Sequence record: OP599913.1
DNA: 64,000 bases
Direction: 5' to 3' (one strand)
The first letter of the stretch is position 1. The number at the start of each line of letters is the position of its first letter. Shown piece after piece: positions 37,626 through 53,399 of this stretch. The position numbers and the translations under genes were made by a program. Under the pieces are notes generated by a model. It was not told where the DNA came from, ran no database searches, and saw only the letters and a program-made list of their open reading frames with translations.

Positions 37626-40600
37626 TCAATTCAAACGGACGGTTTTATCGGTTCCCTGATTCACCTGTTTGTCTTGCATCTCCGCCATCCGACCCAGTAC
37701 CTTGTAGATCTCAGCCAGAATACTGTTCGTATCCGAACTGTTATCACCCAGTTTACCCAACGAGGCCTTAAGCTCAGCCACCAACGCAGAGTCATCACTA
37801 CGGGTGGTCGTAAGTGCCTCGGTGCCCCGAGTGGACTGAGGAACAGGTTCAGACGGCGCAGGCGGAACCGGTTGAGGTGCAGAGGGGGGTGGAGAACCCT
37901 CATTAGACCTCGGAGTCGAGATCGGGACATCCGTAGCCGGGTTACCAAAGGTGGGAGTAGGCGTAGGTGGAACGTTCCGTTGCATCGGTCCAACCACACC
38001 CCCTCCCAGTCCGGTGGTATCCTGTCCATTCACGGACTGCCCGCCTTGCACAGCGTTAAGGAACTTGTTCGCTGCTTCAGGGGACTTAAAGGCCGCGTGA
38101 ATATGCCCACCCGTGCCGAGTGCCGTTCGACTGCGGTATTCATTGATGACTTGGAATTCCTGAGGGCTCAATCCTGCCCGACGAAGAATATCCGTTACAA
38201 TGGCAACCGCTTGGTCACTTCCTTGTGCACCATTCACCAAGGTGAAGTCTAACGCCAGGCCTTTAGGATGAGCACCTTTAGACCCCTTATTGACGTGGTA
38301 GGCGTCATTCAGTGCAGAGAAGTACCGGAAACCCGGAACTGTCTGTTGAATGATTTTACCCAGTTCTTCCACAGCAGGGTGGTGTTCACCCCCCGCAATG
38401 GCTTCAGGGGATTTCAGGCGCAGTCCACTGCTACCCGGTGTATTGGTGTTAACGATCATCCCACCGTTATCACCTGACCCGTATTGTCCCCCTCCGCCTC
38501 CCATGGTTCCATTCAGGGACGGCAGACTACCACCCACAACGCCCGGAGCCGGTCTACTGACTTGAGGACGCTGGGGTTCGCTGGGGGCTTCTTGACCGTA
38601 CAGGTCGGACCCAGTTTGGCTTCCTAACCCACTTCCAGCCGTTTTATCAGCCGTGGTCAGTTCGCCACTTTGCAGTTTCTTCAGGTAATTCAGATAGAGC
38701 GCATAGCGCTGAGGCATTTCAGGTAACGGATTACCTCCATTCAACCCTGTGGCCGCTCTACCGAAGTCACCGGTTTGGCTAATACTCCTCAAGAGCTTAG
38801 AGTTCCTGAAGAAGTTCACCGCAATGGCTGCCATGACATTCGGATCGTTACTGGCCAGCTCTGGTCTGTTCTCCAGATCAATACCCAGCTCTTGGCCGAC
38901 CCTCCGGTAATTAGCACGACCCGTCAGCTGAATAAACCCACGCCCTCGGTAACGGTACCCATCACCAGCTTCCCTGTTCCCTAAGGAAGCACCTTTACCC
39001 CCACCGTACACGGTATTGGCGATGGCCACTTCGCCAGCTTGTACGAGGGCTCTCGCTTGTTCCATGCTCTTCACTTCCCTGAAGAGTTGAACCAAGCGTT
39101 CCGGACTGCTGTACTTCATGTTCTCAGTGGTCCGGGAATAGCCTGAAGACTCGTAGTTGGTAAGGGCGAGCATTTCAGCGATTTCACGGGGATCCGTAAA
39201 GCCTTGTTTCAGCATCTCACGGATGATCAACTGCTCCGCCAACGGTTTGGGTACACTCACCCCTCGATCCGTTCCTTGGTTCGTACGTACACCGGTCATA
39301 TCCAGATGACTGGTGTCCGAATCACCCGTAATAGGCGTGAAGCCAAAGGCATTCTCAGGGGTTCTGAACCGACCGTCGCTGCTGTACGTATTCCCAGCGT
39401 CTCCGCCAAAGGTACCGTACATCCCTCCTAGAGCAGAATCTCTCCGAGACCGGAACTGTTCCGGGGTAGAAACATTCGCTTGTTGGTCGGTGAGCCCACC
39501 CCCTACCCGGTGAGGACTGATCTTCTCAGCCCAGGTTTGGGCGTTGGTCTTACCCGCTTCCAATTCAGGGTCTTTGAGTTTAGCTTCTACCGACGCTTCC
39601 CCCAAGAGGTTCAACATCCTGTCAACTTTATCCGACCGCCCTGGAGAGGTTTCCCAGGCGAAGGGTGCCGCCCGTACGTTCCAGACTGAAATGGTAAAGC
39701 CAAAGACACCATTGACTTGGGTTTGAGTCAGTTCCTTGGCGATCTCATACCGTGCGGTGGCGGAAAGGGTTCTCCAAACCACACCCGGTAGCCCCCGACG
39801 GTATTTCTTCATCAGGGTCATGTAGTTGGTCAGTACCGGCAGGAACCGATCCCTGAACCACTTACACCAGGCATCCGCGTACCGATCATCCACCCGGAAG
39901 GCGTCCTTGAACCGACCGAAGAGTTCACCTATGTCGCCCTTGAACACCATGTCATCCCCTTTCGCCATAAACAGGGATTCACAATGACGTTCCAACTTGA
40001 GGACAGCTTCGACCCGCCAGGGGATATCCTTATCATTCCCGTAGGTAGCCACCCGGATAGCAGTAAGCATATCCAAGGCTTTACCATCTGGCATCAGGTC
40101 TTGGATATAGATCTGACCGACAACCGCATTGGCGGTATACGCTTTCCCTAACCGATCGATTTCACCTTTAACCTCCTTCAGGCGATCGGTGGCCTCCATC
40201 TTCTCCCCGAAGTCTTTCCACTGGGTACTCCGGTCTTCCAGCTTCCGTTCCAGTTGAACCCGTTCCTTCTGAAGGGACTCCAGACTTTGGCCTTTAACCG
40301 TAGAGACGGCAAAGGGATCAATGGTGGGATCTTTAGCCCCGACGTACTTCTTCAGAGCCTCCAGGAGGTTACCCACCCGGATGATCGTCATTTGTTGATC
40401 AAGGAGAGGAGTCTCCTGGTCAATCTTAGCTACGATCTGGTACGGGGAAGGCACCAACCCACTGAGGGCACTGTGGGCTTGCTTAGCCACCTTGTACACG
40501 ATTAAGTCAGACGAATCGTCATAGTCCTTCAACGACCGCAGTTTAACCGCATCCAAACAGGCCAGGTAGGTCAAGTAAACGGGTTTGAACCGTCCATTGA

Positions 40601-43600
40601 ACCAGGTAAAGACTTCACCAATTTCATTACGGTCTTGAGGATTGCCTACGAAGAGACGAAGGACTTCCTCAATAGGCGCTTGCTTAGACAGCGACGCACG
40701 CCCATTTCCAATCACCACATGGTCTTTTAGCAGGTTCTCAACGTTGAGGATTTTAGCCGCCAGAGGACCTTGAGGATCTGAGAGACCGTACTGAACCATC
40801 CGTAGTTCAGTTTGTTTCCCCTTACCTGAACCAAACAGGGAATCCCATCCCCATTTAGAAGTCTCCAACATCACCCCAAAGGGACTGTACATCGAAGACC
40901 CCAGGGCATCCGTAGTAGGACTCTTTCCTTTGACCTTCTCCAGAATCCATTTCGCAATGGTCTGTCCACCCAGTAAGCCCGCGGTAGCACCCACTTGTTG
41001 GTAAAGACTATTACCGGCTTTACCCACTTTAAGGATTTGGTCGGTGGTATCGAGTTTCTTCGTTTCTTCGTCAGTAGCGACCTGGTACATTTCGTATGCA
41101 GACAATGCACCAGCGCCAATCAAACCGGCGCGTCCTACACCCAGTTTACCCAGACCATTCAATAACCAACCGAGTCCACCAGCGACGCCCTTAGCGATAA
41201 TCGGCAACAGTTTAAGTCCCATACGACTGAACTTAAACAATGCACTGAACCCGCTCCAGAGGACCTTAGAACCCAGGAAGCTGGTCAACCACTCGAAGCC
41301 TTTCTTAACACCTCCTACCAAACTGCTCAGGAGACCGAAGATACCGAACTTCTTCTTCTTACCGAGTTCTTTCTCATCTTTCATACCGAAACCGAAGTTT
41401 TCAGCAATCGAGATGATGGCATTCTTAACGGTGTCGTCTTTCTCTTCCTGGAGTTTTTGCGTGCGGTCGGCCAGTGAGTTAGCTCGGGTGGTATCACTGG
41501 TCGACGCTGACCGACGGAACCGATCGGTGTTGTCCCCCGCACCCGCTTTTCCTTTAGCGGCTCTAAAGCGCTCCAGGGCGTCTTTAAGCGCTGGATTCTT
41601 TTCCATAAGGGCTTCGGTGAGGGTAAGACCGTTTCGATCTCCTAGGGACCCTGGAGGGCCTTCTGGGGCATCTTGGGAACCTGGTACTGGAGGAGTAAAG
41701 GGATTAGGGCTACCATCCGGGGATTTATACCCCCAATGTTTCAAGAGGAGGTAATAGATCCGATCCACGGAATTGACCACAGGGGAGTGATCGGTACTGA
41801 ACGGATTCTTAACCCGACCCCCCATGCCTTTCGCATACCCGCCCGCACGGTCTTTCAGTTTACCAAAGAGATCCAACCCGAACTGTCCGGCTTGTTTAAG
41901 CCCTGCACCCAGCTTGTTGATACTGGTCCCCATGGAGGTTTTAAGTCCACGGTCGTATTCTTCAGCCGTAATCAGGGTATTCCCTTCCTTGTCATACACC
42001 GGTCCATCGATCTCATCCCATCCCTGGAGTTCAACGAATCCGTCTCCACTCCGTTTGAAGTATTGACCTTTACCAAAGCGACTCCCCAGCAAAACCGGTT
42101 CATCTTCGCCTTCAATGTAAATATCCATCCGGTACAGACGTGTACGAGCTTTATCCCAAAGCCCTTTCACTCGGTTAACAGGATCCAGCCAGTTAAAGGC
42201 TTTCATAAAGAGATCCCGCACCTTATTCAGGCCTTTAAGGAATACTTCCTTGTTGTCTTCGGTAAAGAGTTTACCCGCTAAGCGGCTAGCGCCAATAACG
42301 GCTCCGTTGGCCAGGTCTTTAATACTCCCGGTAATCTGATCCCACCCCTGAATGATCTTCCCGGTGAGCATATCCAGATACTCACCCTTAAAGAGTTTAA
42401 AGGATTCAAGGATAGGGGTATCAGACCCTTCTTCGTATAGGTCTTCCGTGTCCTCGGCTCGACGAGCAGCCGCTCGGGCACGCAACTTGTTATATGCCAT
42501 CCCTAGCGCCAAGCCACCTCCTACCAATGCAGCACCTTTCGGGTTGTAGATCGCCATACCCGCCAATCCACCCAGTAACCCACCCAGTACCAACGGTTGA
42601 TTGTCCAGGAGTTTATCTATTCCCTTATTAAACAGATCCCCAAACGACGTACTCTTAATCCGTTCCAGAATACTCCGTTTCTGTTGTTGAATGACCTCTT
42701 CAGCTTCAGGGGTGGTTTTCTCGTAGGGTTGACGTTCCAAGATCTTGGTGAGGATATCGTTACGGTTCCCTCCCAGTTCTACCAGTTTACCCAGCAGGCT
42801 GTTCCCTTGGGTCACCTGGTCGTTCAGAGCGGTGAACAGAGAAGACGGATCCGTAAGACCCGAACGACTTACACCTCCCTGCTCAATATGCGCCCCGAGT
42901 TTATCTAAAGTTTCCCGTACACCCTGAAGGGTTTCATTCAACTGAGCGTTCTCAGCCGCAATCACACCTCCGGCGTCTCGACGTCCTCTTCCTCGTCTGC
43001 CAAAGGAACGGGTCTTACGCACCGCTTCTTCCAGAGGGTTGTCATACGTCATCGCACGGTCAGGGTTGTCAATGAAGGACTGGAGAACGTTCCGGAAGGT
43101 GTCCATATTGACTTCATCATGGCCATTTTCAGACTTGATGATGCCGGCTTCTTTCATGACGTTGTAATACCCAGACGAACGCAGCATATCGACGCGCTCG
43201 GCAATGTCCGGCATAAACCGACCCAGGAGGTTGGATTGTTCCGTTAACTTGGCGGCGCGTTCTCGGGCTTGTTCTGTAGGAAGACGAGCAATGGCGCTCG
43301 CCCGGTCCAGGGTACTGCCCTCCTTAAAGGCCGTAAAGGCTTCCGGGGTAATATCAAAATTCCGTTGGAACAATTCCCGGATTTCATCCGCTACCTGACG
43401 GTTTACCCCTTTGGTCTCCAAGTTCATGTACAGGTACGGACTGAACCCTTTACGTTTATCCGCGTTCTGAACCAGTTGCATCGCCAATACACGGCGGGCT
43501 TCGTTGGACAGTTCCTTATTGGGGTCAATGGAATCCACCAACCGAAGAGACGTATCCGCTTGGGACTTGAATTGGTCTTTATCCATTACCCGGTTAAAGG

Positions 43601-45239
43601 TATCCGCTACCTTTTGGTTATGGCTGACCAACTTACCCCGTACGTAGTCATAACTCGACGCTTTAAGGGTATCATCCCCCGTACGGATCTTTTCAATCGA
43701 CAAGTGAATGTGGCTGAGCAGTTCGGGAATCACTTCATTCAGGGTACGGGAAGACTGTTTGTTCCAGATCTCCGGTTCGTGGGCATCCATTAACCCGCGA
43801 CGTTTCAGGCTGTAACGACTCCCGGTGGGTTGGTACATCTCATCCAACAACCCCGCCATGCCTTTATTCGCCCCTTTCTTCAGGGTGTTAATAACCGTCC
43901 ATTCCACTTTACCCAAGGGCTTTTGGCCTGAACGGAGCGTACTGAGGTATTGTTCGTAGTCCCCATCCTCGTCAAACGAGGATCCCCAGTTGTGGTATTC
44001 CGAAAGGGTATTGACCATCCCTTCCGCATTACTGAGGTTATACGACGCTACGTTACCCAAGTCCGTGAGTTGTGCGTACGCGTTATCCGCCCATTTCCCC
44101 AGTTCCGGGAATTGTTTCTTGAACTTGGCAACGTATTCCTTCCCTTTCCGGGAATTGATCATCCGGGGGAGGTTGCTAATGAACATTTGGGCTGCAACGT
44201 TACCCACCATAGTTCCTACGTTGAGCGGCATGCCTTCCGACATCTCCGCCGCCATGCGCATAGCACCAATCAGATCACCCGCACCTCGGACTCCGTCCCC
44301 TCGCGCATCTTTACCGAACCGATCGTTAATAAACTCCCGTATTCCTCCAAAGGAGCCTTTAACCGTATTGAAGACCGATTCCCGAATGCTCTTACGCATC
44401 GCTTGACTGTGGGTGGTCTTTTCGTAATCACTCTTAGCGGAGTTCACGGCAATGGTCTTCAGTTCAGCAATCATCCGGTGATTACTGGCTTCCATGAACT
44501 TGTAGAACTTCGCGCTGGTCAAATAGGAACGGGCCAACAGGTTCACCTTGAGGGTATCATTCCTCAATTGAACTTTACGTTGGTAATTCACCATTTGTTC
44601 CAGCAGTTGGTTACTCCGCCCAATACTCAGGTTCAGGGTATTCAACCCCCCAATGGTGCGGCCACCTACTTCGGTCATCATGGCGGTAATACTTTCACCC
44701 ACCCCAATGACCGTTTCCCGCTCTAACAGGGAGTTAGCATCTTCACTCCCCAGCAGGTCTTTCACATCATTTTCGCCCACATTTTCCATGGACGGGGTGT
44801 CATTCACCGACGACGTGTATGGCTTCCAACTGCTGAAGTCATTCTGACTAAACCGAGTCAGTCCACTGGCCACACCCCCGGTGATCTTATTAGGAGCTAT
44901 TTTACCTAACTTATCACCACCCCGTTTAGCCAAGTATTGGAGGTCCACGACTGCATCGTAGCTTTCACGTTTAAGTTCGTCTACGATCTCTCTCCGACGA
45001 CGGTTAATATCCGACGCCGTCGTAAAGGCAGTCCCCCAGGTCTTAGGGAGGACCATCTTCAGGGTGTTCAACCGAGCATCGGTGTCCCCTACTGTCTGAT
45101 TCACTACTCCTGACAAAAACCCGGTTGCTACCGAACGAATGAACCCCGGTTTCTTCCCATCGAAATCGGTATCGAAATCAATATCCCCAGTAAAGGGATC
45201 CTCTCCCCAATCGAAATCATCGAATGTATTATCCGCCAT
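37626..45239 (-). CDS. tape-measure-like structural peptidoglycan hydrolase (EL gp183/phiKZ gp181-like) with GH19 and M15-type domains
   Basis: 2537 aa, long helical body; NYESSG and YRYRGRGFIQLTGRANY (GH19); HPKGLALD..GGHIH (H-x6-D, HxH zinc motif); divergent from vRNAP beta' as in phiKZ. Confidence 0.9.
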   Translation of the reverse strand: MADNTFDDFDWGEDPFTGDIDFDTDFDGKKPGFIRSVATGFLSGVVNQTVGDTDARLNTLKMVLPKTWGTAFTTASDINRRRREIVDELKRESYDAVVDLQYLAKRGGDKLGKIAPNKITGGVASGLTRFSQNDFSSWKPYTSSVNDTPSMENVGENDVKDLLGSEDANSLLERETVIGVGESITAMMTEVGGRTIGGLNTLNLSIGRSNQLLEQMVNYQRKVQLRNDTLKVNLLARSYLTSAKFYKFMEASNHRMIAELKTIAVNSAKSDYEKTTHSQAMRKSIRESVFNTVKGSFGGIREFINDRFGKDARGDGVRGAGDLIGAMRMAAEMSEGMPLNVGTMVGNVAAQMFISNLPRMINSRKGKEYVAKFKKQFPELGKWADNAYAQLTDLGNVASYNLSNAEGMVNTLSEYHNWGSSFDEDGDYEQYLSTLRSGQKPLGKVEWTVINTLKKGANKGMAGLLDEMYQPTGSRYSLKRRGLMDAHEPEIWNKQSSRTLNEVIPELLSHIHLSIEKIRTGDDTLKASSYDYVRGKLVSHNQKVADTFNRVMDKDQFKSQADTSLRLVDSIDPNKELSNEARRVLAMQLVQNADKRKGFSPYLYMNLETKGVNRQVADEIRELFQRNFDITPEAFTAFKEGSTLDRASAIARLPTEQARERAAKLTEQSNLLGRFMPDIAERVDMLRSSGYYNVMKEAGIIKSENGHDEVNMDTFRNVLQSFIDNPDRAMTYDNPLEEAVRKTRSFGRRGRGRRDAGGVIAAENAQLNETLQGVRETLDKLGAHIEQGGVSRSGLTDPSSLFTALNDQVTQGNSLLGKLVELGGNRNDILTKILERQPYEKTTPEAEEVIQQQKRSILERIKSTSFGDLFNKGIDKLLDNQPLVLGGLLGGLAGMAIYNPKGAALVGGGLALGMAYNKLRARAAARRAEDTEDLYEEGSDTPILESFKLFKGEYLDMLTGKIIQGWDQITGSIKDLANGAVIGASRLAGKLFTEDNKEVFLKGLNKVRDLFMKAFNWLDPVNRVKGLWDKARTRLYRMDIYIEGEDEPVLLGSRFGKGQYFKRSGDGFVELQGWDEIDGPVYDKEGNTLITAEEYDRGLKTSMGTSINKLGAGLKQAGQFGLDLFGKLKDRAGGYAKGMGGRVKNPFSTDHSPVVNSVDRIYYLLLKHWGYKSPDGSPNPFTPPVPGSQDAPEGPPGSLGDRNGLTLTEALMEKNPALKDALERFRAAKGKAGAGDNTDRFRRSASTSDTTRANSLADRTQKLQEEKDDTVKNAIISIAENFGFGMKDEKELGKKKKFGIFGLLSSLVGGVKKGFEWLTSFLGSKVLWSGFSALFKFSRMGLKLLPIIAKGVAGGLGWLLNGLGKLGVGRAGLIGAGALSAYEMYQVATDEETKKLDTTDQILKVGKAGNSLYQQVGATAGLLGGQTIAKWILEKVKGKSPTTDALGSSMYSPFGVMLETSKWGWDSLFGSGKGKQTELRMVQYGLSDPQGPLAAKILNVENLLKDHVVIGNGRASLSKQAPIEEVLRLFVGNPQDRNEIGEVFTWFNGRFKPVYLTYLACLDAVKLRSLKDYDDSSDLIVYKVAKQAHSALSGLVPSPYQIVAKIDQETPLLDQQMTIIRVGNLLEALKKYVGAKDPTIDPFAVSTVKGQSLESLQKERVQLERKLEDRSTQWKDFGEKMEATDRLKEVKGEIDRLGKAYTANAVVGQIYIQDLMPDGKALDMLTAIRVATYGNDKDIPWRVEAVLKLERHCESLFMAKGDDMVFKGDIGELFGRFKDAFRVDDRYADAWCKWFRDRFLPVLTNYMTLMKKYRRGLPGVVWRTLSATARYEIAKELTQTQVNGVFGFTISVWNVRAAPFAWETSPGRSDKVDRMLNLLGEASVEAKLKDPELEAGKTNAQTWAEKISPHRVGGGLTDQQANVSTPEQFRSRRDSALGGMYGTFGGDAGNTYSSDGRFRTPENAFGFTPITGDSDTSHLDMTGVRTNQGTDRGVSVPKPLAEQLIIREMLKQGFTDPREIAEMLALTNYESSGYSRTTENMKYSSPERLVQLFREVKSMEQARALVQAGEVAIANTVYGGGKGASLGNREAGDGYRYRGRGFIQLTGRANYRRVGQELGIDLENRPELASNDPNVMAAIAVNFFRNSKLLRSISQTGDFGRAATGLNGGNPLPEMPQRYALYLNYLKKLQSGELTTADKTAGSGLGSQTGSDLYGQEAPSEPQRPQVSRPAPGVVGGSLPSLNGTMGGGGGQYGSGDNGGMIVNTNTPGSSGLRLKSPEAIAGGEHHPAVEELGKIIQQTVPGFRYFSALNDAYHVNKGSKGAHPKGLALDFTLVNGAQGSDQAVAIVTDILRRAGLSPQEFQVINEYRSRTALGTGGHIHAAFKSPEAANKFLNAVQGGQSVNGQDTTGLGGGVVGPMQRNVPPTPTPTFGNPATDVPISTPRSNEGSPPPSAPQPVPPAPSEPVPQSTRGTEALTTTRSDDSALVAELKASLGKLGDNSSDTNSILAEIYKVLGRMAEMQDKQVNQGTDKTVRLN

Positions 45240-45269: not shown

Positions 45270-46712
45270 ATGAAACCGACTAACATTACCCTCTTAGACC
45301 CCCGGACGATTGTTCCGGGTGTCTTTAAACCTATTACGTCTACGGACTCATTTGAAGGGATGACTCAGAACCTCAATGATGATGGTCTCTTCTCCCTTGA
45401 CATCTTCGGTAAACTGGGTAGTAAACAACGTGATAACACGGAAGCGTATATCGACGTTAAACTTCCCATCTTCAATCCCACTTACCTAAAAGCCCTTATA
45501 CAGATCAAAAGTCTGTATCATTCAATTTTGAAAGGGTCGGAATACGCGGTATGGGATCCCGAACTGAAGGATTTCATAAAATCGAACATCCTGGAAGGGG
45601 AAAAGGGTTTCGCCTTCTTCCTGAAACATTTTGATGAAACCGTCTTCTCCCTGACCCCCTCTCATAAACGCAAACAACGGGTGGAACTGGCGAACCAATT
45701 CCGTAAGACAGCGTTAACGGATAAGGTCCTGGTTATCCCCGCTGGTCTCAGGGATATCCAATTCAATCCGGATGGTTCCCACACCGAACCTGAAATCACT
45801 GAATTCTACCGCGCCTTAATGTTCCGGGTGAGGGTGATCCTCGGGAATAAGGAAGATGCCCTGAACCCCCTTTACGATACCGTTCGGTGGGGGGTACAGA
45901 ATGCTTTCTTGGAATTGGATAATTACCTCTTTGGTTTACTCCAAGGGAAAGGGGGTGTTCTCCAGCGTCGTATGTCCACCCGGGGGGTTCACAACAGCAC
46001 CCGGAACGTCATTACCGCCCGTAAAGTCTCCAGGACACGTTTAGACTTCGACGACGGTGTAGGTCCTAACTCTGCGGACATGGGACTCTACCAAGCCCTG
46101 CTGAACTTCCCTTATGTCTGCATCAATGCGTTAACCAACAGCTACCTTTCCAACATCTTCACCCCCAGCTCTCAAACCGCTAAGCTGGTGAATACCAAGA
46201 CCCTGGAATACGAATACGCTGAAGTCTCCCCTGAGGTGGTAGAGAAATGGACCACCGCCACCGGGTTAATGAAACTCTTCAACGGGTTTGCCGATCCCTC
46301 CTTACGGAGTAAACCCATTGTCATTGAGTGGAAATACTTAGCCCTCATTTATGATGATGGGACTGATGTGTGTGTTCTCCATGACATCAACGATCTCCCT
46401 CAAGGGAAAGACCGTAAACGGGTGAAACCTATCACCTACATGGAACTCTTCTACTTGAGTTGCCACAGTGTCATCGAAGAACAGATTACAGGACAAACCC
46501 GGTATCCCATTACGGGGATTGGCTCTATCTTCCCGGCTAAGGTTAACCTACGTACCACCACCAATGCGAGCCAGCGGGTCATTCGTAATCCGATTGATTG
46601 GAGTGTGCGGGAAACCTGTAAACGGTTCCCTAAACGTGAAGCCCACCCCGATTACTTCGATGCCATGTCCGTAGACCCCTCTAGAGAAGCTTTGCTCGAC
46701 AGTGACCATGAT
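45270..46712 (+). CDS. rpoC: virion RNA polymerase beta' (catalytic half), exon 1
   Basis: VIPAGLRDI and GVLQRRMSTRGVHNSTRNVIT align with beta' PPDLRP and [20 protein letters not shown]; ends DSDHD, completed to DHDGD by exon 2. Confidence 0.9.
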
Positions 46713-46742
46713 TAGATAGTGATGCATGATATAAACTCACTA

Positions 46743-46794
46743 TACAACTCCTATTGTATGCGGAAATGTTCGCATTCGACCATAAGGAGTTGTA
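46743..46794 (+). promoter_or_regulatory. RBS-sequestering hairpin of the HNH gene with internal TATG
   Basis: TACAACTCCT (46743-52) is the exact reverse complement of AGGAGTTGTA (46785-94), which holds the SD; TATG at 46757-60. Confidence 0.65.
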
Positions 46795-46797
46795 AAG

Positions 46798-48069
46798 ATG
46801 TTAACGTGTTTTGGAAAGAAATACGTGTTGTCTACAACCAACACGGTTTACAATGTCACCGATAAGACAGATGTTCCAGTCCATCGGATGACAGACGGGA
46901 ATACGTTCTTCATCGCACGGGGCGATGAAAACGAACTGGTTAAGATCAAACTGGGGTTAATGATCCTCCATGGAGAAGGAAAGTTCCATCTTCCTCTCTC
47001 TGAATGGGAACAGGTGAAAGTAGGTTTTCTGGATGACGATACAGGAAACTTTGCAGCGGATAACCTTTACTTGGTCTATCCTGAAGAGGGCATCCCTTAC
47101 CCTGAACTCTCTGGGTACTACTACATCCCCGGGTTTGAACTCAACGCAATCAACCGAGACGGTGTGGTATACCGAACACTTAGAAAGAATCTTTACCCAC
47201 CGTATCTGGGTGGTAACACCGTTCCTAACAGTTTCTACCCCTTTGTTCGACTGGATGTGGTCAGTGGGGATGAACGCAAGTATGTCCACCGGCTACTGGC
47301 GGAGACCTTCGGTAAGCCGCCTAAGGGCTACCCCAAGCTAATGGTCGATCATAATGACGGTAACAAGATGAACTTCAAGCTCTTTAACTTGATTTGGGTT
47401 ACCGCTAAGAACAACACTTTCAAAGCGTACAACAATCAAGAAGCGAGAGCGGACAATAATCCCTTGGAGGTTTTTGACAGGGAATTAGGTCAAGTCTTTA
47501 AGTACGTCAGTCAAAATGAGTTTGCGAGAACCATGGAGGTGGATTCTTGGTGCATTAGTCTGGTACTCAAACGTCCTCGTTCAGTGTACAAGAACAGGTA
47601 CGTTCTTCGTCGGAAGGGAGATACCCGTGACTTCCAAGAGATCTGGGACTATAAACCCCCTGTGGGTAAGAAGATCCTTGCCCGGAATGTCTTCACCGGT
47701 GAAATCACGGTGTATAATTCATTGGCAGAGGCCTCTAGAGCAACACAGGTAGGGACAACAGGCATCCTGACGTCCCTGAGTAACACCAACCCGAGATCCG
47801 CCTTTAAAGACCTTCAATTCAAGCGGGAGTCTGACGAGACCCCTTGGCCTGATTTGAATGAATACGAACTGGAATGCATCCGGCGCAAGATGCACCCTGC
47901 TACAGCTGTGTATGAAATGTTTGATTCGGTAACCCAGGAGACGTCGATTGTGTATGGCGTTGATGCTGTTACCCGAATCACTGGAGCCAATCCCCGTACC
48001 GTTATCGTTTGCGCACGAGAAGGTAAGTTGCTCCATTCCCGTTATCGTTTCAAGAAACTCACACGTTAA
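46798..48069 (+). CDS. intron-encoded HNH homing endonuclease
   Basis: YVHRLLAETF..VDHNDGNKMNFKLFNLIWVT..NN; NUMOD4-like YIPGFELNAINRDG; three C-terminal NUMOD1/IENR1-like repeats. Confidence 0.92.
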   Translation: MLTCFGKKYVLSTTNTVYNVTDKTDVPVHRMTDGNTFFIARGDENELVKIKLGLMILHGEGKFHLPLSEWEQVKVGFLDDDTGNFAADNLYLVYPEEGIPYPELSGYYYIPGFELNAINRDGVVYRTLRKNLYPPYLGGNTVPNSFYPFVRLDVVSGDERKYVHRLLAETFGKPPKGYPKLMVDHNDGNKMNFKLFNLIWVTAKNNTFKAYNNQEARADNNPLEVFDRELGQVFKYVSQNEFARTMEVDSWCISLVLKRPRSVYKNRYVLRRKGDTRDFQEIWDYKPPVGKKILARNVFTGEITVYNSLAEASRATQVGTTGILTSLSNTNPRSAFKDLQFKRESDETPWPDLNEYELECIRRKMHPATAVYEMFDSVTQETSIVYGVDAVTRITGANPRTVIVCAREGKLLHSRYRFKKLTR

Positions 48070-48484
48070 CGCGTTTATATCCATCACTTAGTCCGGCTAG
48101 GCACGAAAGTCCTAGACCGTATTCCTCTGAATTGCTGGGAGTTCACAAAAGTCTGTTGGCTACAACGTAACTGGAAACAGTAAGCGTGAATGCGACCGAA
48201 AGGTAGAAAGAACAACAGACCTGACCTACGCTAACCAATACGGCTAAGGGTCGTAAACAAGGGACAATCAGCCGCTAAGGCGCTACCGGGTGTTAGACCC
48301 CACGCGTAAAGTTCAACGACTAAGGGAGTTATGACCCTGTACACCTACCAAGGAAGGGGGTGGAAGTGGAGGAGACCTAAGGGGGAATAAACCTATTCCC
48401 TACGGTCAAGATATAGTCTGGCCCTGTTTAATAGACAGGCAGGCACCTGAGTGTGCCGGGTCCTAGTATGGACTGACCACCGCG

Positions 48485-48667
48485 GGCGATCAATTGTCGA
48501 GCCATTCTGTTGTAGCGGAAGACAGTAAACAACAGGCCTACGAACTCTTTGGGAAACGGGAGTATTACATCAGTGGTACGGGTCGGTTTTTGTACGATCC
48601 GATCAACGAACCGATTCTCTTTATGTTTAAAGCAGCGACGAGCGGCTTAGAGGATATTGAGGTATGA
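48485..48667 (+). CDS. rpoC: vRNAP beta' exon 2 (60 aa, GDQLSSHSVV...LEDIEV); absent from the ORF track
   Basis: 183-nt open frame right after the terminal G; TGA overlaps the beta ATG (ATGA); spliced product 541 aa. Confidence 0.88.
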   Translation, partial: GDQLSSHSVVAEDSKQQAYELFGKREYYISGTGRFLYDPINEPILFMFKAATSGLEDIEV

Positions 48668-51600
48668 GCAATCCAATTACGTATTCCGAGTTCTTTAAGC
48701 ACTTTGTGCTGCGTAAGAAACAAGACGTTGTAAACCCTAAAGTCCTGGGTATTGGCGAAGTGATCCTTCCTAAGGGGAGTTTACTGCACTTCGTACCGAA
48801 GACGGTTAATGAAAAGGGACCGGGTAGTAGTGAAGCGTTTATCAGTAACTTCCCTAAAGAGGTCTTTATTGAGTTTGTAAGGGACGGGTATAAGCCGGTG
48901 ATGGGGCATGGGCGTACAGTCGCCTATGACTACCCTAAGGCGGTTAAGGCGTACCGGGCGAGTCACTACATGTACAGCTGGGTGCGTGAGATCAGCACGG
49001 TGTACAACAAAGAGAACGTGTTGGTCGTTAAGAACTACGGGATGATTCCCCAGGGGTTCGTTTACCGTCCGAGTATTTTCGTGAATTATGAAAAATACTA
49101 CAACATGATGCACCTGCTCATTGAGAACATCAATGCAGAAGCCGAGAAAGGGGTGCGTCGGCAGTATATGCGGATTGACCTGCCGTTGAACCTACCGTCC
49201 CTGGTTGAGCTTGAGAAAGACTACGGACGGTTTATTGATGGGTTTAATGATGGGCATCCTGTCCTGATGCGCAATATGTTGGAGAGTACGAAGGCTGAGA
49301 ACTGCTACTGGTTATTGGACCTACTGGGGTTCCTGTTCGGCCAGTATTCATTCAGTTTGTTCGGTAAACTCACCGACCAGGCGTATAAGGATTTGCATAT
49401 CCTCTTTACGTCTCAAAGTAAAGTCATTGTAGTACAACTGGGGCTGTTGAAGGGTTGGTTAGATGAGACAAATCCTAAAGACGAGAAAACCTACCCCTCT
49501 GCTCGGAAAGAGTTTGAAAGTCTGAAGACATTGACCCGCCATAATGCGGTTAAACGTTTCTATTTGGCTTTGATGAATCTTTCTCGTGGAGGCGTTCCTG
49601 AGAATGTACTCATTAAAGAGGAAACGAAAAATGTCATCCCAATTGCCGGAGAGAAAGGTACCGTTGACCAAGTGGCTACGGGAACGTCACGAGAAGAAGA
49701 AGAAGAAACATCCAATCTTCCAGAAACCCGAGACCATACTGGCTCGGGCACGGTTCCCCGTGCTGATCGTCCTGCTGGTTCTATCCTTGATGTTTTCAGC
49801 CGAAGTGAAGGACCTGGCGAGGCACATGACGAAGAGCAAGACACAACGGGAGAACGAGGTGCTGATTCAAGTCTTGAAGAGTGGACATCGCCGGTAGATG
49901 ATGAACTGCTGGAGGTGGAGAAAGTCCAAACCGAGATCAATACCAACAAGAATGTGTTTAAGACGCCTGAGAGTGGTGTAAAGCGGGCGTTAGAGGAGCG
50001 GGCTAAGGAAGGTACGCTGACGGTAGCTGAACATGATTTCTTCATGCGTAAAGCGACCCGTTATCAGCACATTGAAATGGAGAACGGTCAAACGTTCGAA
50101 GAGTTCATTCAGATTAAACCCGAAGAGGTTAAAGACCTGGGTGGAGAGATTGAAGGTGAGTTTCTCCCCGTACTGGATGAGAGCATGTTGCGGAGTCGTG
50201 CTAAATCCCTCAAGATCGAGTATCCTCAGAAGTTTTTACACCGGGATATTGGTCGAATGGTGTTGGGTCTTCAGAACGCTGGCTTTGCGATGAACGACTA
50301 CCGGCGTGAGAAGGTCGTCAGCGTAGAAGGCAGTTACGAGGTCCACAGCATTCAGTTGCACGAAGTCAATGGGGATCAGGTAACTGTACATACTCGGCTG
50401 CCTACGGTGCTGAAAGACGGCACCTACGTCATTGATGGTGTTAAGCAACACATGCAACTGCAACGTCGGGAGAAACCTTTCCGGAAGATCAGTCCTCGGG
50501 AAGTGGTGCTGTCGAGCTATTATGACCGTAAGCTCATGGTGAGTCGTAGTCCGAAGATGGTGGATAACCTCTCTACGTTCATGGTGAAGCAAATCTCCCT
50601 CCAGAGTAAACGGAAAGGGTATACGGTCACTAAAGGCAGTACCTGGGATCGTTCCCTTAAAGCCCCCCGGATTTACAGCATTCTGGCTCGTCAGTACAAG
50701 TACATTACTGTCGACGGGTTGGTATTGGACTTCCGGTTGAAGGATCTCCTGGAACTCCACCCTGAGTTCAAAGCCTATACGCGCCCTGATCGGTTCTTGA
50801 TCGGGGTAAAAGACGGATTACCTTTGATCATTGACGATTACGGTAATCTGTACAAAGGGGAAGAGGAACTCGGTACTGTTGAAGACTTGCTCGGTATTGA
50901 TGTTCGTAAAGCGCCTTTGGAACACGTGGTGATTAATATCAGCGGGTATTCGTTCCCGTTGGGGGTGGTCCTGTGCTTCTACTTCGGTATTGATGAACTG
51001 TTGCGGGTGATTAAAGCCACGACGCGTTCGGTACCCGTAGGGACCCGTCCTAAATTGACTGAGGATGAATACGCGATTCAGTTCAATGACGAATACCTGA
51101 TCTTTAACCGTCGGGAGAAGCTCACCACGTTGATCTTCGGTGGAATGCCGAAGTTGAACAACATCAGTAACTTCAGTCGGAGTGATTTGAATAATAACAG
51201 TATCTGGAGTGCGTTAATGGGAGACCCTCGGGTTCGTCCATCTCAGTTCCAGGAAATGAAGAACCTCTTCGATCTCTTTATCGATCCCATTACGAAAGAC
51301 CTCTTGAAAGAGATGAAGCTGTCTGAAGACTTCCATTACTTGCTGATTGATGCAGCTAAGGCATTGGAAACGGATTACAGTCGGCACGAGGTGGAGATTG
51401 AAGAGCAGCGCATTGTAGGGTATGAACGCTTCGCAGGTCATCTCTACACGGAATTTGTAAAGTCCATTCGTCAATACCGGAATAAAGGGAAAGGGCGTAA
51501 ACACAAACTGGACTTTAACCCGGATGCGGTTATTATTGCCATTGGCACTGACCGGTCTACGAACTTGGTGGAAGAAGTGAATCCGGTTCACCAAGTGAAA

Positions 51601-51864
51601 GACCAAGAGGAAGTGACGTTTGGTGGAACAGGTGGTCGTAGTGAAATCACCATGGTCAAACGCGCACGGACTCAGCTGGAGAGTTACAAAGGGGTCATCA
51701 GTGAAGCCAACAAGGACAGTGGTAAAGTGGGGTATGTGACCTACACCACCTCTGATCCGGGTATCGCTGATTTCCGAGGCAATGTTGATCCCAAGAACAA
51801 ACGTACTCCTACCGGTGACGGTTCGGTTACTATGAACCTGATGTACGGTGGAACGCATGACGAT
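48664..51864 (+). CDS. rpoB: virion RNA polymerase beta (N-terminal/main part), exon 1 (phiKZ gp178-like)
   Basis: NPVHQVKDQEEVTFGGTGG aligns with beta NPLSEITHKRRISALGPGG; ends THDD (beta HDD). Confidence 0.9.
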
Positions 51865-52280
51865 TGAGCTGTTGTGAAAACAATAGATCACTCAGTCCAA
51901 CCAGGGAGTAATCCCTTGTTGCCATTACCTTTAATTGCGGGAACCTACTGAGAGCCTTATCTACCAAACCCGAGCAGGAAACCAACGGGCGGCCAACCAT
52001 AACGGGTTGGGGACGGTAACAACGATAAGGATTGGGGAACCCTACGCAGCGAAGCACCTACGTATTGTCGAGAGGACAAGATAGGGTGAACGTTCAACGA
52101 CTACGGATGAAATTTCCGGTAGAGGTGTCAGGATGATACTTCCAAAAGTAAGGTTGCCCTGTATGCTCGAGGTGTGAATAACACTGAGTACAGGGATGAA
52201 ATATAGTCTCGTCATCTAAGGGAAAACCTTAGAGCGTGGTGCTACGCGCACCGGCGGATAGGATATCCGTGAAGATTACG
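51865..52280 (+). mobile_element. ORF-less group I intron (416 nt)
   Basis: P1 ACGAU/GUUGU with U.G at the splice site; P AATTGCGGGAA 51933, Q CCTACGCAGC 52041, R GTTCAACGACTAC 52092, S GAAATATAGTC 52198; terminal G 52280. Confidence 0.92.
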
Positions 52281-53399
52281 GTCAAACGAGCGGTATTCAC
52301 ATCGACTCAGGCCTCTCAAGCAGTGATGGCTAAGAACTACGAGATCGTTACCCTGAGAACGGGTTACGAGAACGTACTGGCTCACCGGACCTCCGATCTT
52401 TACAGCAAAGTAGCTGCTGAAGATGGTAAGGTTACTAAAGTGGAGAACGATCGCTTACTCGTCGAATACAAGGACGGAACAACGGACTCGTATCCCTTAG
52501 GGTTGGTGATTGGGGAAGCCAGTGGGGAATATCATCCCCACAGCCGTACCACAGATCTGAAGGTCGGAGATACCTTCCGTAAGGGAGATGTCATCGGCTG
52601 GGATGAAAACTGGTTCGGTCGAGACCCCTTCTGCCCAGGACAAGTCGGGGTTAAGATGGGTAAAATGTGCCAGATCGTTATGGTGGAAGATCAGGATGTG
52701 TACGAGGACTCTATTGCAATTTCGAAAGAATTGGCGATGGAAGCACGTACCCCCTTTATTAAACCCAGTCGGTTTGCCGAGGACGTGTCAAACAACCTGG
52801 TAATGCGGGTTAAGGTAGGAGATTACGTCGAACAGGACACGATTTTATGTGATATCGAAGAGCCTCACTTGGTGGAGGGCGAGGAGCTTCCTGAGCTCGA
52901 AGCAGACATCAACAAACTCGGTATCAAACAGATCCGTTCGAAGCATCATGGAAAGATCGTACACATCGATGTTCGGTACAACTCTCCCTTAGACAAGATG
53001 TCTGAGTCGTTCCGTTCGTTCATTGTTCAGAAGGATAAGGAAACGAAACGGAAAGGGTTGGTGGAAGGAACCGGTGTCGAGAACAATGCCATTTCCACGA
53101 TGTTCAATCTTAATCGTCCCATGTTAGGTCCAGGTAAGGCGTTCATTACGTTCTACATCGAGTCGTTAGACCCGAGTACCAATGCGGATAAGTATGTCAT
53201 TGGGAACCAGATGAAAGCCACTGTGGGTCGTATCATGGAAAGACCGCTTAAGACTGCCAGTGGGATTGTAATTGATGTGAAGTCGAGCTTTAAAGGGATG
53301 TTTAACCGAATGGTGCTCAGTTTGAGGAACAAACTGGTTGCTAACGAGTATGGTTACCAAATCACTCGCCAAGCCATTAAACTCTACAGAGGTAAATAA
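52281..53399 (+). CDS. rpoB: vRNAP beta exon 2
   Basis: HDD|VKRAVFTSTQASQAV aligns with beta HDDANRALMGANMQRQAV; YEDSIAISK and ADKYVIGNQMK motifs; spliced product 1439 aa. Confidence 0.9.
   Translation, partial: VKRAVFTSTQASQAVMAKNYEIVTLRTGYENVLAHRTSDLYSKVAAEDGKVTKVENDRLLVEYKDGTTDSYPLGLVIGEASGEYHPHSRTTDLKVGDTFRKGDVIGWDENWFGRDPFCPGQVGVKMGKMCQIVMVEDQDVYEDSIAISKELAMEARTPFIKPSRFAEDVSNNLVMRVKVGDYVEQDTILCDIEEPHLVEGEELPELEADINKLGIKQIRSKHHGKIVHIDVRYNSPLDKMSESFRSFIVQKDKETKRKGLVEGTGVENNAISTMFNLNRPMLGPGKAFITFYIESLDPSTNADKYVIGNQMKATVGRIMERPLKTASGIVIDVKSSFKGMFNRMVLSLRNKLVANEYGYQITRQAIKLYRGK

Follow-up and report, generated by a model that had tools for sequence, protein, structure and literature searches.

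In phage phiKZ, gp179 is described as a homing endonuclease encoded by an intron within the virion polymerase operon (PMC12676376; PMC11512511, citing Mesyanzhinov 2002 and Ceyssens 2014), and mutants from which it has been deleted are viable (PMC12676376; PMC11512511). The phiKZ protein gp180 is a virion RNA polymerase subunit and carries the Mg-binding motif DFDGD (PMC10612078). In PhiPA3, the HNH endonuclease of the gp210 intron nicks the intron-less phiKZ gene gp178 and confers a competitive advantage (Birkholz et al. 2024, PMC11620839), and I-HmuI, the endonuclease of the SPO1 DNA polymerase intron, nicks one strand (PMC12908238). Here, a related arrangement is described in a stretch of 64,000 nucleotides of sequence record OP599913.1 (the window), in which positions 46,713 to 48,667 hold a predicted group I intron and the short second exon of the gene for a virion RNA polymerase's N-terminal beta' subunit. 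In our reading, to which we give a probability of about 0.88, a mobile group I intron that encodes an HNH endonuclease splits the catalytic motif DxDGD of this gene, and splicing would restore a beta' protein of 541 amino acids. A first-pass annotation of the DNA had claimed that this motif is cut by a group I intron carrying a homing endonuclease, and both the sequence itself and comparisons with relatives support this. The intron is new and publicly unannotated; the principle is already established in phiKZ and PhiPA3.

Over this region, the window matches Pseudomonas phage IR-QUMS-PaBa1-GHS-2021 (OP599913, genus Elvirus, EL-like) at 100% identity and eight further EL-like records, phage EL among them, at 97.5–99%. 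The intron, with an intact endonuclease open reading frame (ORF), is present in all nine Elvirus records (97.5–100% identity). The interrupted gene and its insert are made up as follows; here and below, a slash within a sequence marks an insertion site.

45270–46712, + strand: beta' exon 1 (N-terminal subunit, homologue of EL gp184 and phiKZ gp180), 481 codons, ending in Asp1-x-Asp2 of DxDGD (..DSDHD)
46713–48484, + strand: predicted group I intron, 1772 nucleotides, beginning with an in-frame UAG and ending in the omega-G, G48484 (from Rfam and intron-less homologues)
46798–48069, + strand: I-HmuI-like HNH homing endonuclease ORF, 423 amino acids, located within the extended P1, in its terminal loop
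48485–48667, + strand: beta' exon 2, 60 codons plus stop, beginning with Gly-Asp3 (GDQLSSHS...)

The ORF at 45270–46715 encodes 481 amino acids and has the carboxy-terminus ...LLDSDHD, followed by TAG, just as the first-pass annotation had recorded. Exon 1 matches PHROG 2986 (E = 1.8e-192) and is 100% identical to its counterpart in OP599913 and 98.7% identical to EL gp184. The insert is preceded by T46712 and has G48484 as its last base, with GGC GAT CAA starting at 48485. When these 1772 nucleotides are removed, GAT is joined to GGC GAT CAA, giving DSDHD/GDQ and, from 481 plus 60 codons, the 541-residue protein that had been proposed. The predicted junction peptide of the joined protein is ..EALLDSDHD-GDQLSSHSVVAEDSK. 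The exon 2 stop codon TGA (48665–48667) overlaps the start codon of the beta subunit (48664) as ATGA, again as claimed. The Mg-binding motif is whole only across this junction, with DHD contributed by exon 1 and GD by exon 2.

For these comparisons, the exons were searched as separate pieces and then compared with natural intron-less homologues; the homologue sample consisted of the best 120 clusters of exon 1 (P0001–P0120). Three independent lines in the sequence data argue that the junction is real. In PHROG 2986, exon 1 occupies profile positions 5–486 and exon 2 positions 487–538 (E = 1.9e-8), with neither gap nor overlap. Of the best 120 clusters, 84 reach 530 amino acids or more, and every one of these contains DxDGD near residue 479 and continues after it with QLNSNS..AEDSK..LFGKREY, the counterpart of exon 2 in the window; the claim that a hidden exon of 60 codons completes the motif is borne out by these clusters. 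Finally, when an intron-less relative of 538 amino acids (P0003, 75% identical) is aligned by tblastn, its residues 1–481 fall on exon 1 and its residues 482–538 on exon 2. The same split between residues 481 and 482 is seen in the genome record of the window (L003), in two EL records (L001 and L010) and in two metagenomic loci (L005 and L007). Exon 2 is 82% identical to an intron-less relative.

Two other placements were considered and rejected. A junction shifted by one base (GAUU/..G/GC) would give Asp-Cys-Asp, where the Gly is nearly invariant. A translation start of its own for exon 2 has TTG at 48494 as sole candidate, which lies downstream of the Gly-Asp codons. The default ORF list contains exon 2 only as a 57-residue ORF with this TTG start (48494–48667), consistent with the earlier remark that the ORF track misses this exon.

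A search of the PDB with the single sequence of exon 1 gave no match. The family profile matches AR9's non-virion polymerase in its beta' N-terminal subunit (PDB entries 7S00 and 7S01, chain d, E about 1e-13) and also many bacterial beta' chains, a homology that takes in the double-psi beta-barrel region. In the profile alignment, the DxDGD of the family lies opposite the catalytic DYDGD of AR9. A note in the PhiPA3 record ties gp212 to phiKZ gp180 and EL gp184. Because of its homology to phiKZ gp180, the EL-like beta' protein is presumably packaged in the virion, and the packaged polymerase would be catalytically dead unless the intron is spliced.

The insert itself is, by the evidence of its RF00028 match, its same-site orthologues and its covarying helices, identified as a group I intron. 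The search with Rfam group I models that the first-pass annotation had proposed as a check yields a match to RF00028 at 48075–48438 that spans the full model (1–253), with an E-value of 7e-10 locally and of 2.2e-8 over the whole 64-kb window, although its 45.5 bits are below the Rfam gathering score of 50; the scan detects the window intron only when an E-value threshold is used. The conserved P, Q, R and S elements that had been claimed are present, as AATTGCTGG at 48130, GTTCAACGACTA at 48311 and AGATATAGTC at 48409, and the R and S elements are exact.

On contigs encoding truncated beta' homologues, four metagenomic lineages were found to have an insert at the same codon boundary (CATGAT/ ... 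CG/GGN GAY CAR). The three complete same-site inserts score 68.3, 63.9 and 63.8 bits against RF00028, above the cut-off, and the fourth contig (L004) is cut. The insert of L008 and L009 is only 457 nucleotides long and has no ORF. Homologous cores (66–69% identity) interrupt the same gene in Shewanella phage FishSpeaker, Vibrio phages VP4B and 2 TSL-2019 and Photobacterium phage PDCC-1, and the phiKZ beta' gene contains a homologous core as well.

A core alignment of 485 columns was made from 10 related introns, with pair counts taken from the consensus fold and scripts. The RNAalifold consensus contains 71 pairs, 39 of them with compensatory changes, and comprises P2, P4, P5 with a long extension, P6, P7, P7.1, P7.2, P8, P9 and P9.1. 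P3, which forms a pseudoknot with P7, also covaries (UCCUC with GAGGA, UUCUC with GAGAA, UCCCG with UGGGA). All positions invariant in this alignment are kept in the window copy. The presence of both P7.1 and P7.2 points to an intron of IA type. The predicted elements are:

48097–48457, + strand: ribozyme core (RNAalifold on the 10 related introns, helix coordinates mapped)
48097–48115, + strand: P2
48122–48128 with 48368–48374, + strand: P3
48133–48138 with 48268–48273, + strand: P4
48141–48144 with 48262–48265, + strand: P5, plus the P5 extension
48274–48312, + strand: P6
48318–48322 with 48414–48418, + strand: P7
48323–48338, + strand: P7.1
48342–48362, + strand: P7.2
48374–48407, + strand: P8
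48422–48439, + strand: P9
48442–48457, + strand: P9.1

Upstream of the core, a long-range pairing extends from the splice site and brackets the endonuclease gene; its strands are:

46710–46714, + strand: P1 5' strand, exon GAU plus intron UA, with U46712 as the 5' splice-site U (unconstrained co-fold)
46718–46736, + strand: 5' strand of the P1 extension, consisting of AGUGAUG, a CAU bulge and then GAUAUAAAC; pairs with 48073–48088
48073–48088, + strand: 3' strand of the P1 extension, beginning 4 nucleotides past the endonuclease stop codon
48089–48093, + strand: internal guide UAGUC, with G48091 in a wobble pair with U46712 (co-fold and conservation)

In an unconstrained co-fold, UAGUC pairs with the exon GAU and the first two intron bases, UA. 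The guide, (A)GUC(C), is located just 3' of the helix that brackets the endonuclease gene and is kept in all 10 related introns. Within this bracket helix of 16 base pairs, GUGAUG (46719–46724) pairs perfectly with CAUCAC (48083–48088). In L005, L007, VP4B, TSL-2019 and phiKZ the sequence of the helix is wholly different and the pairing is preserved. In the ORF-less L008, the helix is a plain hairpin of 17 base pairs that starts 3 nucleotides past the splice site. A second, paralogous group I intron in the window, starting at 51865, has a P1 of the same design, with 7 perfect base pairs between GAU/UGAG and CUCAGUC. In the resulting model, P1 is long-range, its exon part amounts to three base pairs, and the endonuclease gene is in the terminal loop of the extended P1. 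The last six bases of the exon, CATGAT, recur in the intron at 46725–46730, 13 nucleotides past the splice site, where they partly form the bulge of the P1 extension; this may be chance, a target-site remnant or a decoy.

The endonuclease matches Pfam HNH_3 with its residues 161–206 (41.3 bits, with a cut-off of 24.8) and PHROG 59 with an E-value of 1.6e-48. Compared with I-HmuI (PDB entry 1U3E), the catalytic HNH motif VDH.DGNK.N...NL.WVT is kept. The protein is 25–53% identical to the intron ORFs of L005, L007, FishSpeaker and TSL-2019 and to phiKZ gp179. Ahead of its start codon, a further element is predicted:

46744–46793, + strand: hairpin sequestering the ribosome-binding site, covering AAGGAG (46784–46789), with the ribosome-binding site as its 3' strand

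The segment 46737–46803 folds with -22.2 kcal/mol (z = -5.2), and none of 200 shuffled sequences is as stable. In L005, L007 and FishSpeaker, the ribosome-binding site is likewise covered by hairpins, each of different sequence. Gibb and Edgell (2010) reportedly found that the ribosome-binding site of I-TevI in the T4 td intron is sequestered by an RNA hairpin, limiting its translation, and our hairpins suggest a comparable restraint on translation of the endonuclease.

The distribution of the intron is patchy. The empty site is known from eight intron-less relatives in IMG/VR (L011–L018), with which the exon flank of the window (46689–46712) was compared. All eight intron-less relatives read TCN GAC CAC GAC/GG, and all four intron-bearing lineages read AGT GAY CAT GAT/GG. 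In a tree of exon 1, the intron-bearing lineages do not form a clade and are interleaved with intron-less ones, so that three changes are needed, at least two of which are forced by well-supported branches. In the wider family, the motif is interrupted in 29 of 119 homologue clusters, and at least 22 changes are needed on a tree (FastTree). GAT accounts for 21–39% of the Asp codons of intron-less genes; because of this codon bias, the GAC pattern is only mildly unlikely, and for that reason it is the Ser codon, AGT as opposed to TCN, that counts most. In addition, P1 requires GAU at position -1. The Ser codon AGT, shared across interleaved lineages, looks like the outcome of co-conversion of the flanking exon during homing, or of codon-level resistance. 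Patchiness and a flanking co-conversion signature are both apparent, and they lend indirect support to nicking of the intron-less allele and subsequent homing.

The mechanism we propose starts from an intron in DxDGD that separates the GAU of the second Asp from the Gly codon. Because the first intron codon is UAG, an unspliced transcript would give a product of 481 amino acids, 60 residues short at the carboxy-terminus and without the third catalytic Asp. For splicing, the exon GAU and intron UA would pair with UAGUC at 48089–48093, with a G.U pair at U46712, and P1 would run on into the long helix, the terminal loop of which would hold the HNH gene of 423 codons. Guanosine-initiated splicing at U46712 and ligation after G48484 would then produce GAU/GGC GAU CAA, encoding DSDHDGDQ. 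The endonuclease probably nicks intron-less alleles of co-infecting relatives, with gene conversion spreading the intron, and the hairpin at its ribosome-binding site probably holds its translation low.

Several observations weigh against a splicing, mobile intron in the form given above. Its P1 pairs only three exon bases, and inspection of 48080–48090 against GGCGAU reveals no convincing P10; P10 is weak or absent in many group I introns. At the Rfam gathering threshold (50 bits), the RF00028 search reports nothing in the window. The insert boundaries, the restored frame, the ribozyme core and the endonuclease domain can be read directly from the sequences; splicing of the EL-type beta' intron in vivo is something we infer, as are the nicking activity of the endonuclease and the homing of the intron by it. 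In addition, one long-read transcriptome study of phiKZ, under the conditions it used, detected no splicing of the predicted introns in its reads (PMC10914365), and for this reason caution is due in assuming efficient splicing.

The insert could be a decayed intron that no longer splices, with beta' a pseudogene and the polymerase supplied otherwise or dispensable. The score under the Rfam cut-off and the phiKZ long-read result would fit decay, but the window copy has lost none of the invariant core positions, both exons are intact and 97.5–100% conserved in nine independently isolated, viable Elvirus phages, exon 2 is 82% identical to an intron-less relative, and no second copy of the beta' gene was found in the 64-kb window; of the explanations weighed here we find this the hardest to credit. 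Alternatively, a free-standing HNH gene might have split beta' into a gene in pieces, with the 481-residue part and a small carboxy-terminal piece translated apart and assembling without any splicing. Public annotation does present separate coding sequences, and functional split genes created by endonuclease insertion occur in other phages, nrdA/mobE of Aeromonas phage Aeh1 being such a case. Nevertheless, the stretch from the endonuclease stop codon to exon 2 is exactly where a complete group I core is found, the insert boundaries (U/ and G/) restore the frame exactly, and ORF-less inserts are present in L008, at the same site, and in VP4B, at a neighbouring one. No start codon precedes Gly-Asp in exon 2, and a start at the first possible TTG would lose the third Asp. 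Translation in pieces is highly improbable in our view.

A further alternative keeps the intron and changes only its P1. The first-pass annotation had drawn a local hairpin in which the exon CAUGAU pairs with GUGAUG (46719–46724) over a 6-nucleotide loop, with one G.G mismatch. The window and L007 both allow this hairpin to be drawn, and GUGAUG does lie near the 5' splice site, where guides usually are. However, at -1.3 kcal/mol the hairpin is no better than shuffled sequences (z = -0.5, with 52 of 200 shuffles folding as well), and the orthologous introns of L008 and L005 do not form it. GUGAUG belongs instead to the 5' strand of the 16-base-pair helix that brackets the endonuclease ORF and covaries in every relative, and the position of this helix in L008 leaves no space for a local guide. 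The local hairpin, very unlikely as P1, was abandoned for the long-range pairing with UAGUC.

The beta' intron is not the only one in the window, as the adjacent beta gene is interrupted as well:

48664–51864, + strand: beta exon 1 (homologue of EL gp186 and phiKZ gp178), covering positions 2–1050 of 1424 of PHROG 3148 (also tblastn with phiKZ gp178)
51865–52280, + strand: predicted second group I intron, without ORF, 416 nucleotides (Rfam 39.8 bits, E = 1.2e-6)
52281–53399, + strand: beta exon 2, in which the phiKZ gp178 alignment resumes at KRAVF (window position 52284)

This second intron is inserted after ..GGTHDD/ (GAT/TGA), giving the predicted junction ..THDD-VK.., and its site is that of the PhiPA3 gp210 intron (phiKZ gp178 D1072). 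It aligns with the first window intron and belongs to the same family. The joined beta protein would be about 1439 amino acids long; public records annotate only a first part of 1067 amino acids.

A survey of loci L019–L022, L026, L027 and L029, together with clusters P0001–P0120, reveals a hot spot for introns at the DxDGD of virion beta', where the 12 nucleotides between the first and third Asp codons hold four insertion points. The site D/xDGD is used in phiKZ and TSL-2019, DxD/GD in the EL family, DxDG/D in L027, and DxDGD/ in VP4B, FishSpeaker and L029. Those hot-spot introns that were checked in detail have a common guide, (A)GUC(C), pairing with a GAU Asp codon; the divergent intron of L027 follows GGU. 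The non-virion beta' gene of phiKZ, gp55 (L031, NC_004629, 47923–50761), is cut at N/ADFDGD by a paralogous intron containing the gp56 HNH ORF. That intron follows AAU, its last 40 or so nucleotides and those of the gp180 intron are nearly the same, and the annotated 'gp56.1' is the tail of gp55 exon 2. In PDCC-1 (L021, NC_048821, 1680–3399), the intron's 5' end matches that of TSL-2019 (after the first Asp, with C rather than U at -1), and its 3' end and exon 2 match those of VP4B (after the third Asp). No frame encodes the intervening YDGD, and a spliced product would lack two catalytic Asp residues; the PDCC-1 locus is either truly recombinant or the product of an assembly in which two homologous intron cores were collapsed.

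A broader proposal, which we hold tentatively and at somewhat less than even odds, is that this intron family has a three-base guide (GUC:GAU) tuned to Asp GAU codons, that the introns serve as weapons between co-infecting jumbo phages, and that synonymous GAC, CAC and TCN codons reflect codon-level resistance, not drift. If true, GAU tuning would explain three beta' sites (D/xDGD, DxD/GD and DxDGD/) and the Asp-Asp site of beta. Two nearby sites depart from the GAU rule, with AAU at N/ADFDGD of phiKZ and GGU at DxDG/D.

Public records (OP599913, EL and HHBS8_1) present this region as three separate coding sequences, corresponding to EL gp184, gp185 (HNH endonuclease) and gp186, and annotate neither the intron nor exon 2. 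Spurious small ORFs have been called over the non-coding ribozyme stretch in some EL-like records. In HHBS8_1 (PQ287644, L002), three small 'hypothetical protein' coding sequences cover the ribozyme core and exon 2. In the same record, beta' exon 1 (1501–2944) is annotated as two overlapping coding sequences, with a frame change near codon 228–239 by tblastn, which may be a sequencing error or a frameshift of the isolate. The RefSeq entries of VP4B, PDCC-1 and TSL-2019 (L020–L022) give exon 2 as a separate 'RNA polymerase beta subunit' coding sequence of 53–59 amino acids with an internal start and no intron feature. A literature search for an intron in EL or Elvirus found no describing paper, the EL genome paper and the primary paper on the phiKZ intron being outside its reach.

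Upstream of beta', an ORF of 2537 amino acids (37626–45239, - strand) is transcribed divergently. In relatives its annotation reads 'endolysin' or 'tail fiber protein', and a Glyco_hydro_19 domain is found in homologues. All relatives examined have kept the giant ORF, beta' and beta as neighbours.

In all nine public EL-like genomes found here, the essential beta' subunit of the virion polymerase is shown truncated, without its third catalytic Asp and with exon 2 absent, and the beta gene has the same annotation problem. The error passes on to proteomics, structure work and phylogenies built on these records. For early transcription, the injected polymerase would rely on two splicing events of the previous infection cycle, one in beta' and the other in beta. 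In the light of the PhiPA3 gp210 findings, endonucleases encoded by introns of these genes become candidate weapons in co-infections of jumbo phages, and the EL-type HNH enzyme with 'empty' sites bearing GAC codons offers a second, directly testable pair for intron-endonuclease competition, in Pseudomonas phages of the laboratory. The value of the locus is mainly in annotation and as this second test case; given phiKZ and PhiPA3, a specialist will not be surprised.

Among the known systems, phiKZ gp180/gp179 has the same layout. A similar layout had been suspected there by the first-pass annotation, rightly so, since phiKZ exon 1 ends in LGAD/, exon 2 starts with FDGD, and the literature calls gp179 intron-encoded. 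The same gene is interrupted in both, in the same order (beta' exon 1, HNH ORF, core, an exon 2 of about 60 codons, beta gene), with DxDGD cut, a homologous ribozyme, an (A)GUC guide and endonucleases that are 26% identical. The phiKZ insertion differs in following the first Asp (LGAD/FDGD), 6 nucleotides upstream of the EL-type site DSDHD/GD. Its core is without most of the long P5 extension, and gp179 has 357 amino acids, compared to 423 in the window.

The PhiPA3 gp210 intron is similarly a group I intron with an HNH nickase in a virion polymerase gene of a jumbo phage, inserted after conserved Asp residues, and the second intron of the window (51865–52280) occupies the same HDD/ site. However, that intron is in a beta and not a beta' gene, and the window copy at that site has no endonuclease ORF. 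The SPO1 DNA polymerase intron with I-HmuI is also of group I, in an essential polymerase gene and with an HNH endonuclease, but it has another host gene, the endonucleases are similar over no more than some 60 residues (E = 9e-4), and the window ORF has over twice the length of I-HmuI. T4 td with I-TevI shares the IA type of phage intron and an endonuclease ribosome-binding site contained in a hairpin (AAGGAG in the window, where regulation is predicted); I-TevI is, however, a GIY-YIG enzyme, and its ORF is in the P6 region and not in the P1 loop. The Twort- and K-like introns of Staphylococcus phages are about 81% identical to ours over 65 nucleotides of P3–P5 and have P7.1 and P7.2 as in IA2, although they reside in other host genes and the nucleotide similarity is confined to this short stretch.

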